Made by a program: the position numbers and the translations under genes | The notes under the pieces: model-generated | Told to the model about the DNA's origin: nothing | Database searches by the model: none | The model's input: the letters and a program-made list of their open reading frames with translations, nothing else | Shown: in pieces, positions 663 to 7,270 of the stretch | Layout of the letters: each line of letters opens with the position of its first letter | Numbering within the stretch: the first letter of the stretch is position 1 | Source of the DNA: Trichoplax adhaerens | Lineage: Eukaryota > Animalia > Placozoa | DNA length: 64,000 nt | Direction: 5' to 3' | Assembly (NCBI RefSeq): GCF_000150275.1 | Contig: NW_002060943.1 | Span: 11,842,878-11,906,877, forward strand

Positions 663-3600
663 ATGATGATACGCTCCAACATTCTCAACTTGGTGACTCC
701 GAAAATTGCACAGGTACACCGCCGACTGCATGAAGAGTCTGTTAGAATAGTTGTATATCACAAGTAGACGAGATATTCTTGTGCAGTGAGATTGATAGCT
801 AGAGCAATACTAAACTGTAAATGCATCATTACCATGTAACAAACGATGAATTGATTAGATCATACTGTACGCGTATAGAGTACAATTTTATGGTGATATA
901 CCTTTCAGCAGCAATGTACAGTAGAATTTCTTTCTGTCTCTTAATATTGCGATTGACGTCATTATCTTAATCTAGTTTGGCCTTTGGCGACCGCCACTGT
1001 TGCTGCGGCTTTTTTCTTCTAGTCAAGTCAATTATTTCGCCAAAAAGAAATCCAAGGAAGCTAAAAAGGTATATCTTAACTTATTCTGGAGTATTTGAGA
1101 TGTTTTACCAGTAGACTGCCTGTACCATATTATAATGCGGTATCAATGAATGAATCGTTTCTCTTAAGTCAAGAGTGTGTATTGCATATCCATTTAGTTA
1201 TCGTCAACACAAATCCTACTACGCTCTAACATGAGCCTTCTCCAGTTTGCAAATGAAATCAAGGTAGAGCCAGGTAAGATTTCTTATTCTCTTTAAAATT
1301 ATCAGAACCGTCAAACTGCTAACTGCAGTATTGAGTTCGCCGTAATGCTTATGCTTATTATTAAGTCTACAACTTTCTTGATCGATATAATTGCATGTGT
1401 ATCTTATATTTGCCTCTAAGTTTATGCTCAAACTGAAATGATTCATGAATTGAAACTAACTATATGATACAAATATCCGTGCAAAATCCTTTAAAATTAT
1501 CTACAATATACCTACATCATTCCTTTCAGAAATTTTATGCCGAAAACTGCAAGAGTTAGATGATACCAATCAATACAAGATGGATACAAGTAAGCATTAG
1601 TCGTGCCTTCGTACAAGATCTCACTACAGTTTAAATATGTTACTCACTGTTCCAATTGCAAACTTATCAATTTCATTAATCGAATTCCATGGGTATATAC
1701 TGTAGTAAAGTCGTATGAGGTGCAGTGTAGAATGATAAAACGAAAATCAATTGACTTTTAGTATTATCCTTTACATGATGAGATGCTCGCCTAAGTCATT
1801 GAAAATTGGGTTGATTTTGTTAATATCCCTATTCTAGTCTTAAGTAGAGATCTGCAAGATTTACTATTATTAGAATATAATATAGCAGCTGACGAAATAT
1901 CTCACGGTACATCCCCTAGCAGGTAATGTTAATATGATTTCACCATCGATATGTTGTTATGGATGCAATTTGGTACATTGTTTAATGGACGTCTAATAGT
2001 AATCTTTTATTATCGTAGTGTATTAGAGGATAAGGCAGCATTGGTAACTCGACCACCAGTTGTAACCATCATGGGTCATATTGATCATGGAAAAACAACA
2101 CTTTTAGATCAGTTACGCCACACGTCAGTTGCAGCTGGTGAGGCTGGTGGAATTACTCAACATATTGGAGCATTTTTAGGTCAGTATTAGAATTTCTATC
2201 TTACCCTTAGTTGCTACTGCTACTACTTTGTATTGCATTATTATTGGAAACAGTATTTAATTAACAGATGCGTAATGATAATCTTTGCACCTCAGTTAAC
2301 GTCGCAGAAGGAAAACAAATTACCTTCCTGGACACGCCTGGTCATGCCGCTTTCACTTCTATGAGAGCTCGCGGAGCTAACGTTACTGATGTTGTAGTTT
2401 TAGTAATTGCAGCTGATGATGGAATTAAACCACAAACAACTGAATCTATAAAATATGCGAAATTAGCTGGAGTACCGATTATTGTGGCAATAAATAAAAT
2501 TGACAAAAAAGGTACAAATATTAGTAAAGTTAAATTAGAGTGTTTACGAAACGGATTGCAATTAGAAGAATATGGAGGAGAAATTCAAGCTATTGAAGTT
2601 TCTGCCCTGAAGGTATCTTGTTAACTATTGACGCGAACTCTTCTTCCTGTATCCGTTATAACTGAAATTTATTAACGGTGTATTGATTATGGTAGGGGAC
2701 AAATTTGGATAACTTAATCGAAGCTATATTAATACACGGCGAAATAGCTAACTTGAGAGCTGATCCTACATCTACCGTAAAAGGAGTCGTTATCGAATCG
2801 AAAGTTGATAAAGGCTTGGGGTTTGTCTTTGTTAGCGATATATACATGTTTTCTGATAAATATGAAAATATTCGCTCATGTCTCTCTTCTGGTAGGAACG
2901 TTTCAACTGTTTTAGTGGAACGTGGAACTCTGAGGAAAGGGCAGTTTTTAGTCAGCGGCTCTACTTTTGCAAAAGTAAGCTTAAATGTTTGTCTATTGAA
3001 TATACGTATCCCAGCGGTATGATAAGTTTATGACTATATTACTTTATACCAAGTATTCATTGCTAATAGGACGAACTGTAAGATTATTTATTTTAGTAAG
3101 CCTAACATTTCTATCACCTATCCGATTTCCTATCTATAAATAAAAATTTGAGATGTTATAGTTAATGATTTCAGATTATCAAATACTATAGAAAATTTTC
3201 TTCTATCCTTTCAACAGGTCAGATTACTTTTAAATCACGCCGGCAAACAAATTAAAGAAGCGTTACCTTCTCATCCAATCCAGGTTGCCGGATGGCGGAA
3301 TTTACCTGAAGTAGGAGATGATGTAATACAAACCAACTCAGAGGTAAAGCAACAATCTAATTCATATTAGCTATTAATATTATGTTAAAATACAAATTAG
3401 TTACAGGAAAATATATATATGTAATAGCTAAATTTCTGACATTAGCCGCAAACTTATAGCATTACAATGCTTGATTCTCCAGCCTTATCATGTCTTGCCA
3501 TTGTTTTTTAAGGCTGAGTCTCGCGAGTTGATAGATATTAGGAATTTAATATTAAAAAGGCGTCGAGAAGAAGCTAATTCGGTAGTAGCGCTTAAAAGGA

Positions 3601-4724
3601 AGCAATCAGAAGGTGTCTTGAAAAACAAAAATAAGGGAGATTCGATCTTGGATACGGCCGAGGAGCAAAATGAACTGCCTAAGCTTGCTATTGTTTTAAA
3701 AGGTATACAGCATTACTAAAGTTTACATTTCATCGTATTACTGTAGTTGCCACGTAGAATTTCATGATGGTATTTCTCATGATTTTGTAATAATAAGGAG
3801 ATGTCACTGGATCCGTAGAAGCTGTTATAGAAGCTATACAAACTTTTAAATCGAACGCTATCGAGATCAAGATACTCGAATCAGGCGTTGGACCTATAGT
3901 TGAAAGTGACATCGAATTGGCTGATTCTTTTCAAGGCATGTGTCATTAATTTTTCATGGAGTGTCCATAAGTATTGCACTTTCGATTAACTTTATTCTCT
4001 AAACTTGACTTAGGCATTATCCTAGGATTTAACGTTAAACCAACGAAAGAATCTAGACAATTAGCCAAAAAGCTGGACACATATATATACTCTAGTAATA
4101 TAATTTATAATCTGCTGGAAATTGTTAAGGTAGTGCTTTAGAAGTGTATTGTGAAGTAACTCTGTAATCATTTAAGATCACTACCGGAAAAAAATAAGCA
4201 TTAGTATTAATCATATAATCAAATATATTAATCAACTAAATTTTATTATTCCTATTTCAAACTTATAGAAGGAAGTTTTGGCTAGATTGCCGCTAATCTC
4301 AAAGGAAGAATTTGTAGGAGAGGCTAATGTATTACAAATATTTGATATTGGTGTAAGTAACCGTAAGACGGTACAAGTAGCTGGATGTCGTATCTTAGAG
4401 GGTGCCTTGCAGAGAAACGCAGTATTTCGAGTTTCTAGGAATTCTGAAGTTGTATATGAGGGTTTGTATTTTACTATATCGTATAGTCTTTATATTCAAT
4501 TTTACCTTTTTAAAGCATTTGTTGAACTACTGTATATAACATTCTTCTTATTTATGATAGGTCCAGCTAATTCACTGAAACATCTGAAAAACGATGTGGA
4601 TATAGTTAAAAAGGGTCAAGAGTGTGGGATTAGTTTCGGAAATGCATGTACAGTTGAAGAAAATGACAAAATAACTTGTTTTACTATCAAAAAGACCGAG
4701 CAAACTGTTGATTGGGATTTTTAA
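663..4724 (+). CDS. MTIF2: Mitochondrial translation initiation factor IF-2 (multi-exon)
   Basis: Spliced reading [10 protein letters not shown]|[31 protein letters not shown] (Arg/Leu/Ser-rich presequence-like), then IF2 G-domain motifs [56 protein letters not shown], the GDVTGSVEA motif, and C-terminal VAGCRI...[22 protein letters not shown]...VDWDF* (TAA 4722-4724). Confidence 0.95.
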
Positions 4725-5723
4725 GGATATTGGTAGATTTTTAAATTCCTCGGGTATTTCATAACAAGTTATGCTATTGCCTCAATGAACATTATTTAGG
4801 TCTGAATTAATTTTCTTGATTTTGAATTTGGTTATGAGATACCTGATAATACTCTCATGGATTAACCTGGTCAATGTCATTTTTAGCAAATTTATTATGT
4901 GATGATGTATGTTATTTATACACCGTACTACTAAAATTATGCAATAAAGAGCGATATTATTATAGAAATTAAAAGTAATATTGTGCATTACACAGCCGTG
5001 CGTGCTTTCCTCATGCGGATCTACCCTAAAATTCCTCAATAATGGAACTTTATTGTTGATTCAACTTACCTAATTTTAAGAAATATGCGTGTTTTAAATA
5101 TGAAACTTTACAGGTTTATCCTATGTTAAACGATAAATTTTCGTTGTAAACTGAAGTCAAATGTAACATAGGCTCTATTTTTAACCTTGGTTCCGATCTC
5201 TAGAGAGCGAACAATTTCAGTAATTCACATACAGAAACTCAAAAAAGTTATCGTAGGTAAAACCGAAAGACCCCAATGTACACTGAATAGTTAAGTAATC
5301 TAACCAGAATTACGAAGGATTATCGGAAGCCAGACATAAGAACACTAAGAGTTTCAGTATACAAGTCTACACCACCAAGGGCAGGCCTAAGATACCCTTC
5401 GATTTGCAATATTACTTAGGTCAATGTACTATTTGTGCAGCAAATTGTGCTTTAACGTAAAAGAACATGCCGAATTCTCTTCTTTTCCATTAGTAGCACG
5501 AATAATAAAGCAGGATACAAGTGATTGGAAGCAATTCCATACGTCATTTCTAGTAGTAGGATATAACTGATAGCTTTGCAGCAAGTTTACAGTGGTTAAT
5601 CGACGATCGATGCTGATTAAAATTGACAGTTTTTATTTTGTTACACCACTATCATCTCATAATGATTTACAGTACAAATGCGGAAATGAAACAATGCATA
5701 AGTATTTAACGTTATAAAATGCA

Positions 5724-6490
5724 TTACTTCTTCTTTCCACCTTTGGCGGACTTGGCTTTTTCTTGTTGCTGCTCCTGTGTAAATACGAATGTTGCACCAC
5801 ATTTTCCACAATATTGACGATCAAAATGATTTGCCATAAAAACACCAGCTTCATAAGGGCATTCACGACGTAAACGGGTAATTTTGCCATTTTCATCCAC
5901 TCTGTAGTACTTTAATACAGCCAATTTTACCTTCTTTTTCTTATGCTTGTTTTTCTTGGGTGTCGTGTAATTCTTCTTCTTACGTTTTTTAGCACCACCA
6001 AGCAAATTCAATGTCAAATCTAGTGTAGATTCTTCTTCAATACCACATCCTGCGATCAGTTGATAATCTTCTAGCGTTCTACCAGCGTATGTCAATCGTT
6101 GCTGATCACATAAGACGCCTACAAGTATGAACAATGTCCTTAATATTCTATCCTACGATCGACATAAAGTACCCGTAAGCCGTACATGATCTAAATCTAG
6201 TGCCTGATATTGAGTTCAAAGATAGTCAGTACTGTACTTGTTACTGTACGTATTTAGTGTCTACTTCATCGATCAATATTAACCTTCTCTGCCTTCAATT
6301 AAGTTCTTAACATCTTGGATAGTTTGGTCACCAGTCACCTAAGGATAACGTAAAACGTTGTCGATTCAGTTTATTTTTTTATTGGTTAGTGAAAGCTTTT
6401 CGTCTGATCGAAATCATAAGCGTCTGATAATCATGCAGTTACCTGGAGAGTGATCGTTCGACCGTCTATTACTCTAGTGAAAATCTGCAT
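5724..6490 (-). CDS. RPS27A: Ubiquitin-like protein / 40S ribosomal protein eS31 (S27a) fusion
   Basis: Exons 6490-6443, 6338-6284 and 6118-5724 splice to a 76-aa UBL ([10 protein letters not shown]...LNLLGG) followed by [45 protein letters not shown]...FDRQYCGKC, the eS31 signature. Probable 5'UTR intron about 6667-6499; AATAAA on the minus strand near 5637-5632. Confidence 0.95.
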
Positions 6491-6711
6491 TCTTCTACCT
6501 AAATTGGCCAAAATTAATAATGGTTTTAACTCTACTTTACAAATTATTAACGGCAATCGAACTTACTTAACGGATTAACTCAAGGATAAGTCAAAAAGTA
6601 ACCGATAATAAGAAACGATTCTAATACAGTTATAAAATAAGAATATTATTTTGCAAATCCAAATTACCTTTCCTCCTCACTTTACAACACTACACAGTCA
6701 GCCACGCGACA

Positions 6712-6752
6712 TGAAGAGAGAGAAATCCCACAAAGCCATGCGATATTTTATA
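6712..6752 (-). promoter_or_regulatory. Ribosomal-protein-type core promoter: TATA box plus polypyrimidine (TCT/5'TOP) initiator
   Basis: Minus strand reads TATAAAA (6752-6746) and, about 30 nt downstream, TTTCTCTCTCTTC (about 6724-6712), then a short non-coding exon ending in AAG|GTAATT. Confidence 0.7.
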
Positions 6753-6762
6753 AGGCAATTAT

Positions 6763-6965
6763 GCGCCGGCGCAGTATGTCTATGAGCGGACCATGCGCCA
6801 TAAGAGTAGTACGATACCATATTAACTGGAAGTCTGTATGTACTGTACTTCACTGGTGTACTGTACACTATATAGTGTACGGTGATCTACAAAACGAATG
6901 CGATGCTTGAAAACGGCTGTACGCCGGCGCAGTAGGACTATGAGCGGGGCTGGCCACGAGCCATA
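6763..6965. promoter_or_regulatory. Duplicated GC-rich motif CGCCGGCGCAGTA-n3-CTATGAGCGG in the RPS27A/STPG4 divergent promoter
   Basis: gcgccggcgcagtatgtctatgagcgg at 6763 and acgccggcgcagtaggactatgagcgg at 6921; conspicuous in AT-rich DNA. The regulatory role is inferred from position only. Confidence 0.5.
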
Positions 6966-7270
6966 CAGTACTGTACACTGTACACTACTGTACACTTTGT
7001 ACAGTATAATACTGTACAGTACTGTACAGTACTGTACATACAGTATAGTCAATTATGGACTACTTAAAGAAAACCTTCCAAGTATCTGTCCATCAATATG
7101 GTTTTTACTTTTTACCATAGAGATATAAGAAGAAAGTTTTTATTTCTTTATGATTTAACACTAATTTTTACTGCGGTTTTTGCCAGTTGAAAAGTACGCT
7201 TATACAGTACAGTACTGTACATTGTACACTGTGGTTTACAGTACAGTACTGTACTGTACGGTACTGTAGT
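6830..7270. repeat. Mixed-orientation TACAGTA/TACTGTA tract
   Basis: Ten TACAGTA or TACTGTA heptamers in 6961-7050 alone; further clusters at 6838-6880 and 7201-7268. Confidence 0.9.

Follow-up and report, generated by a model that had tools for sequence, protein, structure and literature searches.

The sole eS31 (RPS27A) gene of Trichoplax adhaerens carries a diverged ubiquitin-like domain, probably a cleavable pro-domain

We analysed a stretch of 64,000 nucleotides from Trichoplax adhaerens (NCBI RefSeq assembly GCF_000150275.1, contig NW_002060943.1, positions 11,842,878 to 11,906,877 of the forward strand), hereafter called the window. It encodes on the minus strand (6490..5724) a gene with three coding exons, the third of which spans 6118-5724 (Table 1). 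The product consists of a ubiquitin-like domain joined via Gly-Gly to the basic N-terminus of the ribosomal protein eS31 (junction GG/AKKRKKK). The splice sites are GT..AG throughout, the codon of Gly-35 straddles exons 2 and 3, and the codons of the two glycines closing the domain lie at 5999-5994. The spliced product is identical to a database protein of 165 residues named "Ubiquitin-40S ribosomal protein S27a [Trichoplax sp. H2]" (P0001): exon 3 matches it with 100% identity over the full query, and exons 1-3, with the Gly-35 codon completed across intron 2, account for the complete protein. In this region the window and the H2 contig hardly differ. The protein was matched by the Pfam profiles for ubiquitin (PF00240, E=4e-17, residues 3-72) and for Ribosomal_S27 (PF01599, E 1.8e-21 to 2.8e-21, 75.6 bits for a cut-off of 22.3), in both cases far beyond chance. 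A preliminary description of this DNA had given the sequence of the 76-residue domain, which the exon translations reproduced exactly, and had placed introns after coding nucleotides 48 and 103, which we confirmed; its boundary at 5995 was one base off, since the domain ends at 5994. When the gene and the sequence upstream of it were scanned with Rfam, no family was matched inside the gene and no intronic snoRNA was found.

Table 1. Features of the eS31 gene and of its 5' region (positions in the window).
Feature	Position	Strand	Remarks
Palindrome TGCGCCGGCGCA, upstream of the inferred transcription start	6762..6773	-	No differences between the window, the H2 and H4-like contigs and the third lineage; flanks vary
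Inferred non-coding first exon (5'UTR)	6668..6722	-	Donor GT 6667-6666; hardly varies between lineages that differ by 0.4-0.8 in synonymous divergence
Inferred 5'UTR intron	6499..6667	-	GT..AG; conservation low relative to the flanking exons
Coding exon 1	6443..6490	-	48 nt; codons 1-16, MQIFTR start; donor GT 6442-6441; same boundary as in RPS27A of the coral Porites
Intron 1	6339..6442	-	104 nt, phase 0, after coding nt 48; also in Porites (L040) and placozoan contigs L032 and L041
Coding exon 2	6284..6338	-	55 nt; codons 17-34 and first base of Gly-35; has the sole lysine, K27
Intron 2	6119..6283	-	165 nt, phase 1, after coding nt 103; same in Porites
Exon 3, ubiquitin-like part	5994..6118	-	Residues 35-76; final ten residues and junction do not vary among the three placozoan lineages
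Exon 3, eS31 (ribosomal protein S27a) part	5727..5993	-	AKKRKKK start; Pfam Ribosomal_S27
Stop codon TAA	5724..5726	-	Read from sequence and translation

The gene is probably preceded by a non-coding first exon, whose boundaries we placed using the GT/AG dinucleotides and the conservation of the region. This putative exon starts with a pyrimidine-rich, TOP-like stretch (CTCTCTTC) and contains an upstream open reading frame of four codons (ATG TCG CGT GGC TGA). The palindrome TGCGCCGGCGCA, around 40 nt further upstream, may have a regulatory role. Together, the conserved exon and the palindrome would fit an actively transcribed ribosomal protein gene. A second, similar motif (CGCCGGCGCA) is found near 6914-6923. 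Dense palindromic repeats of the TACTGTACAG type occupy the positions 6960-7057 and 7191-7270, and similar repeats flank two of the orthologues described below (L032 and L041). They gave only sub-threshold microRNA-like matches in Rfam, which would agree with simple repeats that form hairpins.

Searched in six frames with the Pfam profile, the genome (105.6 Mb in 1414 contigs) contained a single eS31 locus, i.e., this gene, and a genome search with P0001 found neither a second copy nor a pseudogene. The canonical Ub-eS31 paralogue that the preliminary description had considered was thus not found in this genome. Canonical ubiquitin is encoded elsewhere, in the six tandem repeats of a polyubiquitin gene (contig C1375) and in the ubiquitin part of the Ub-eL40 gene (contig C1385). 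These copies differ from each other at about 7-20% of their nucleotides, always synonymously, which indicates that selection at the protein level still keeps ubiquitin constant in these genes. There was no sign of recent homogenisation between the two loci (G000:C1375:62280-63635 and G000:C1385:292115-293615). FUBI-eS30 is a separate gene (contig C1401), in which the FUBI domain is encoded in one uninterrupted exon. We also found on another contig (G000:C1404:1462703-1463857, plus strand, equivalent to L008:1039-2193) an open reading frame of 384 residues with five tandem, mutually divergent ubiquitin-like domains, which are not separated by GG. Its last residues are CCVM, a prenylation motif of the CaaX-like type, and its product may be a membrane-anchored poly-ubiquitin-like protein.

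The domain fused to eS31 aligns with canonical ubiquitin over the full 76 residues without gaps, and 37 of these are identical, the value that had been obtained by manual alignment. Six of the seven lysines are changed (K6R, K11R, K29L, K33R, K48R and K63E), leaving K27. Four of the six losses are charge-conserving replacements of lysine by arginine. None of the four residues of the recognition patch is kept (L8I, I44T, H68D and V70T), and the tail reads LNLLGG (R72N and R74L, with G75 and G76 retained). The preliminary description had listed the six lysine changes, the retention of K27 and the changes I44T, H68D, V70T, R72N and R74L, and all of them hold in the alignment. Hence, the domain lacks the features of ubiquitin proper: the seven lysines, the L8/I44/V70 patch and the R72/R74 tail. 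The hydrophobic core, for which we used a list of 14 ubiquitin positions from general knowledge, is identical to ubiquitin at 12 positions, for only 25 of the other 62. This contrast indicates that the residues determining the fold are kept while the surface was rewritten. The core and the ungapped alignment also make it likely that the domain retains the ubiquitin fold. Its similarity to the FUBI of Trichoplax is lower (27/76 identical residues).

These characteristics are largely shared by other placozoans. Our sample covers three lineages, i.e., Trichoplax, an H4-like lineage and a third lineage, Polyplacotoma not being among them. The H4-like orthologue was found in two metagenome contigs (L032 and L033) with the same three coding exons, and its spliced product is the GenBank protein of Placozoa sp. 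H4 (P0122). The third lineage, found in assemblies of sequencing runs (L041 and L042), does not differ in gene structure, and its tail-to-tail neighbour is again an IF-2 gene. The DNA of the conserved junction had no exact match in the JGI metagenome contigs, which thus provided no further placozoan lineages. The three lineages have in common K6R, K11R, K29L, K33R, K63E, the altered patch, and the invariant last ten residues of the domain followed by AKKRKKK. Position 48 is an arginine in Trichoplax and in the third lineage, but a lysine in H4. The near-lysineless state put forward in the preliminary description is therefore accurate for Trichoplax, but it is not absolute across placozoans.

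The reading frame and the splice sites are intact in three independent assemblies. We estimated substitution rates with the Nei-Gojobori method, exon by exon and omitting the split codon 35, between placozoan lineages whose synonymous divergence is 0.4-0.8. The dN/dS of the ubiquitin-like domain was 0.28-0.34, significantly lower than 1 (p=0.002-0.016), which excludes the neutral evolution that the preliminary description had proposed to check for. The dN/dS of the eS31 part was 0.07-0.13. The domain changes about four times faster than the ribosomal protein to which it is fused. The domain is thus under purifying but relaxed selection. The locus is presumably expressed, to judge by the GenBank protein of H4 and by the conservation of the 5'UTR and the promoter. 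For H4, PMC6067683 mentions an EST library, and the H4 record therefore probably rests on transcripts.

The IF-2 neighbour is an MTIF2-like gene of a mitochondrial initiation factor, encoded tail-to-tail with the eS31 gene (positions 663-5700 of the window, plus strand; also L034:4769-6767 and L041:3283-5205). It is kept in all placozoan contigs that are long enough, and Porites has a protein kinase gene in its place. We therefore rejected this synteny as a support for orthology beyond the phylum; it holds within placozoans only.

The zinc ribbon of eS31 is eroding in placozoans (window 5727-5860, minus strand; L032:1130-1210; L041:1060-1150). The four cysteines of the ribbon are kept in all of the 21 non-placozoan sequences that we aligned. 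In the three placozoan lineages three residues between the first two cysteines are missing. Trichoplax has also lost the second cysteine (CPYEAGVF...CGKC), and thus lacks a four-cysteine ribbon, and a single one of the four cysteines is left in the third lineage (RESPNEPGVF...CGKSG). The strong purifying selection on eS31 is observed despite this erosion.

In yeast, production of the 40S subunit is promoted by having ubiquitin fused to eS31 and again by cleaving it off, and ubiquitin that remains uncleaved on eS31 impairs 40S function. R72 is one of the main residues by which the ubiquitin E1 recognises ubiquitin, whose tail and I44 patch are read by most deubiquitinases. These facts, the conservation of the GG junction, the retention of the core and the loss of the signalling surface together make a cleavable pro-domain the best reading of the data. 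We regard it as probable that the gene is the sole functional RPS27A (Ub-eS31) orthologue of Trichoplax and that its domain is a diverged pro-domain, cleaved off and not used as a source of ubiquitin. Cleavage, a chaperone role and the lack of conjugation are what we infer here from the residues kept and lost. The ubiquitin-coding part of the gene has escaped the constraint that holds ubiquitin invariant. The domain would be produced as an N-terminal pro-domain that aids the folding of eS31 and its entry into the nascent 40S subunit, before a protease of the deubiquitinase type cuts it off at GG/AKKRKK. Once released, it would not be charged by the ubiquitin E1 and would be unable to build chains, hence it would not contribute to the ubiquitin pool, which the polyubiquitin and Ub-eL40 genes would supply. 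Since the tail and the I44 patch are altered, processing would probably need a tolerant or adapted enzyme. An analogy is provided by the cleavage of FUBI in human cells, which is carried out by USP36 and USP16 (PMC10611586). The preliminary description had proposed a tag for ribosome biogenesis that does not form chains and might have a protease of its own; as a functional reading this is plausible.

Alternatively, the domain might never be cut off and would then be a permanent, ribosome-bound ubiquitin-like domain of eS31. The changes in R72, R74 and the I44 patch, on which most deubiquitinases rely, could be read in this way, but the GG is invariant in all of the divergent fusions that we aligned (G75 and G76 are found in 23 of 23 canonical and divergent sequences), and the yeast phenotype of uncleaved eS31 also speaks against it. 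The precedent is the fusion of Giardia, reported to be uncleaved because of G75A (PMC11354881), whereas the GG and the AKKRKKK that follows are strictly conserved in the three placozoan lineages. Permanent attachment is therefore less likely in placozoans, and we consider it an unlikely explanation.

The preliminary description had treated the divergence of this domain as exceptional. This premise was wrong, since the ubiquitin fused to S27a is the known exception to the invariance of ubiquitin (PMC10457151), and since divergence of a similar degree was seen in mites, thrips and many metagenomic sequences. PMC10457151 cites highly divergent S27a-fused ubiquitins for Caenorhabditis (Jones and Candido 1993) and for another 12 species, among which six protist phyla are represented (Catic and Ploegh 2005). 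Trichoplax belongs with them: its sole S27a gene carries a highly divergent ubiquitin, its polyubiquitin is canonical, and its ubiquitin part evolves faster than the ribosomal part. We found no mention of the placozoan case in the literature searched. It is thus apparently unreported, while both the phenomenon and the explanation usually given for it can be found in the literature.

The closest parallel in animals is UBL-1-eS31 of nematodes (Caenorhabditis ubl-1, also listed as a chain of the PDB entry 9bh5), likewise an orthologue of RPS27A whose ubiquitin moiety has diverged in the presence of other, canonical ubiquitin genes. It arose in an independent event in another phylum; our comparison with it covers the gene and its arrangement. 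Set beside it, the placozoan domain keeps the full 76 residues, aligns with ubiquitin without gaps and ends in GG. Among protists, Giardia, Plasmodium, Toxoplasma and Cryptosporidium have divergent ubiquitins on S27a that change faster than the ribosomal part (Catic and Ploegh 2005; Catic et al. 2007, both cited in PMC10457151). The domain of P. falciparum is more diverged than the placozoan one (24/76 against 37/76 identities). The Giardia variant, which differs from the placozoan domain by its G75A change, keeps the ubiquitin fold and was proposed to retain the chaperone role only (PMC10457151). FUBI-eS30 (FAU) is comparable in having a lysine-poor ubiquitin-like domain that ends in GG on a protein of the 40S subunit, and its cleavage is needed for 40S maturation. 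It differs in ribosomal partner and in origin: FUBI is by definition fused to eS30 and orthologous to FAU, whereas the placozoan domain sits on eS31.

Matches to exon 3 provided further divergent fusions. Those of mites and thrips range from 27/76 identical residues in Tetranychus urticae (P0065) and 32/75 in Dermatophagoides farinae (P0071) to 51/74 in Aceria tosichella (P0096) and 53/74 in Thrips palmi (P0105). Together with the metagenomic sequences (P0010 and relatives), they resemble the placozoan gene in having a near-canonical eS31, a domain with 27-53/76 identities to ubiquitin, and a conserved GG. Across the divergent lineages examined the same changes recur: the seven lysines are reduced to between one and five, R72/R74 have disappeared in most cases, and K27 and R42 usually persist. 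The mite, thrips and metagenomic domains nevertheless form separate long branches from canonical ubiquitin, and most of them keep K6 and the zinc ribbon, both of which changed in placozoans. One metagenomic group (P0010-P0014, P0017, P0020-P0023, P0027, P0029, P0030, P0033 and others) is large and diverse; its domains have 73-74 residues, end in LVPTLPGG or LVPSLVGG, and sit on an animal-type eS31. A word-based search with residues 1-76 of the Trichoplax protein retrieved only placozoan proteins and one unrelated ubiquitin-like protein, and few words of five residues were shared with any sequence.

This recurrence bears on the possibility that the domain, once released, acts as a new signalling protein or as a modifier that can be conjugated, served by an activating enzyme and a protease of its own, as proposed for FUBI. 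Such a role would account for the retained GG terminus, the ten C-terminal residues that are invariant across lineages, and the purifying selection acting on the remodelled surface (dN/dS of about 0.3); the predominance of lysine-to-arginine changes (four of six losses) also resembles a selective removal of acceptor sites more than random decay. Yet fewer lysines, the loss of R72/R74 and a conserved GG are found in many unrelated lineages, which fits a common relaxed state better, and the domain changes about four times faster than eS31. We thus find a new modifier rather improbable. The same selection on the surface and the same C-terminal residues might also be due to the binding of a specific partner, and thereby to a function beyond that of a passive pro-domain. 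In a bolder version, to which we give still less credence, selection would have made the domain of placozoans a ubiquitin-like protein in its own right, which has a recognition surface of its own and a protease or partner that evolved along with it. Its change would be coupled to that of a restructured, partly zinc-free eS31 at the beak of the 40S subunit. If this were true, the domain would be a lineage-specific module of ribosome maturation, and more than a relaxed remnant.

The origin of the domain can be traced in the gene structure. In the RPS27A gene of the coral Porites (L040), which encodes canonical ubiquitin, the first two coding introns follow nucleotides 48 (phase 0) and 103 (phase 1), i.e., both positions and phases are identical to those of Trichoplax. 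The structure of the Trichoplax gene thus marks it as an orthologue of canonical animal RPS27A. The FUBI domain of Trichoplax lacks these introns, and the placozoan domain is closer to ubiquitin than to FUBI. These observations support the view, already suggested in the preliminary description, that the domain diverged in place from ubiquitin and was not swapped in; the divergence would have preceded the split of the sampled placozoan lineages. We also built a maximum-likelihood tree of the domains, including ubiquitin and FUBI as suggested earlier; it rests on 76 columns, so that most forks are weak, and leaves out NEDD8 and nematode UBL-1. The placozoan pair occupied its own branch from the node of canonical ubiquitin and did not join FUBI. 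If the domain had come from FUBI or another ubiquitin-like gene, through a swap or by gene conversion, this would explain the FUBI-style N-terminus (MQ[IL]F.R) and the scarcity of lysines, which FUBI shares, but such an acquisition is very improbable given the introns, the identities (37/76 to ubiquitin against 27/76 to FUBI) and the tree. Cnidarian, mollusc and crustacean orthologues have canonical ubiquitin in the eS31 gene. This supports the earlier proposal of an independent conversion, so the placozoan change is independent of those in other phyla.

It is equally improbable, and effectively refuted, that the domain is a neutral, functionless remnant or the locus a pseudogene or an assembly artefact: the domain does evolve far faster than canonical ubiquitin, and the zinc ribbon of eS31 is also eroding, but this is the only eS31 gene of the genome, its frame and splice sites are intact in three assemblies, the dN/dS is significantly below 1, 12 of the 14 core positions are conserved, as are the 5'UTR and the promoter, and its uniqueness, purifying selection and conservation in three lineages therefore exclude both a canonical paralogue and neutral decay.

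Since the phenomenon and its usual explanation are in print, the placozoan gene opens no new question. Through this gene, an early-branching animal phylum joins the organisms whose S27a-fused ubiquitin has escaped extreme conservation, and the shared introns are clean evidence that the change took place in situ. The recurrent loss of lysines and of R72/R74, and the recurrent retention of the fold core, K27 and the Gly-Gly, suggest which features of the domain are needed for its ribosomal role and which serve ubiquitin signalling.
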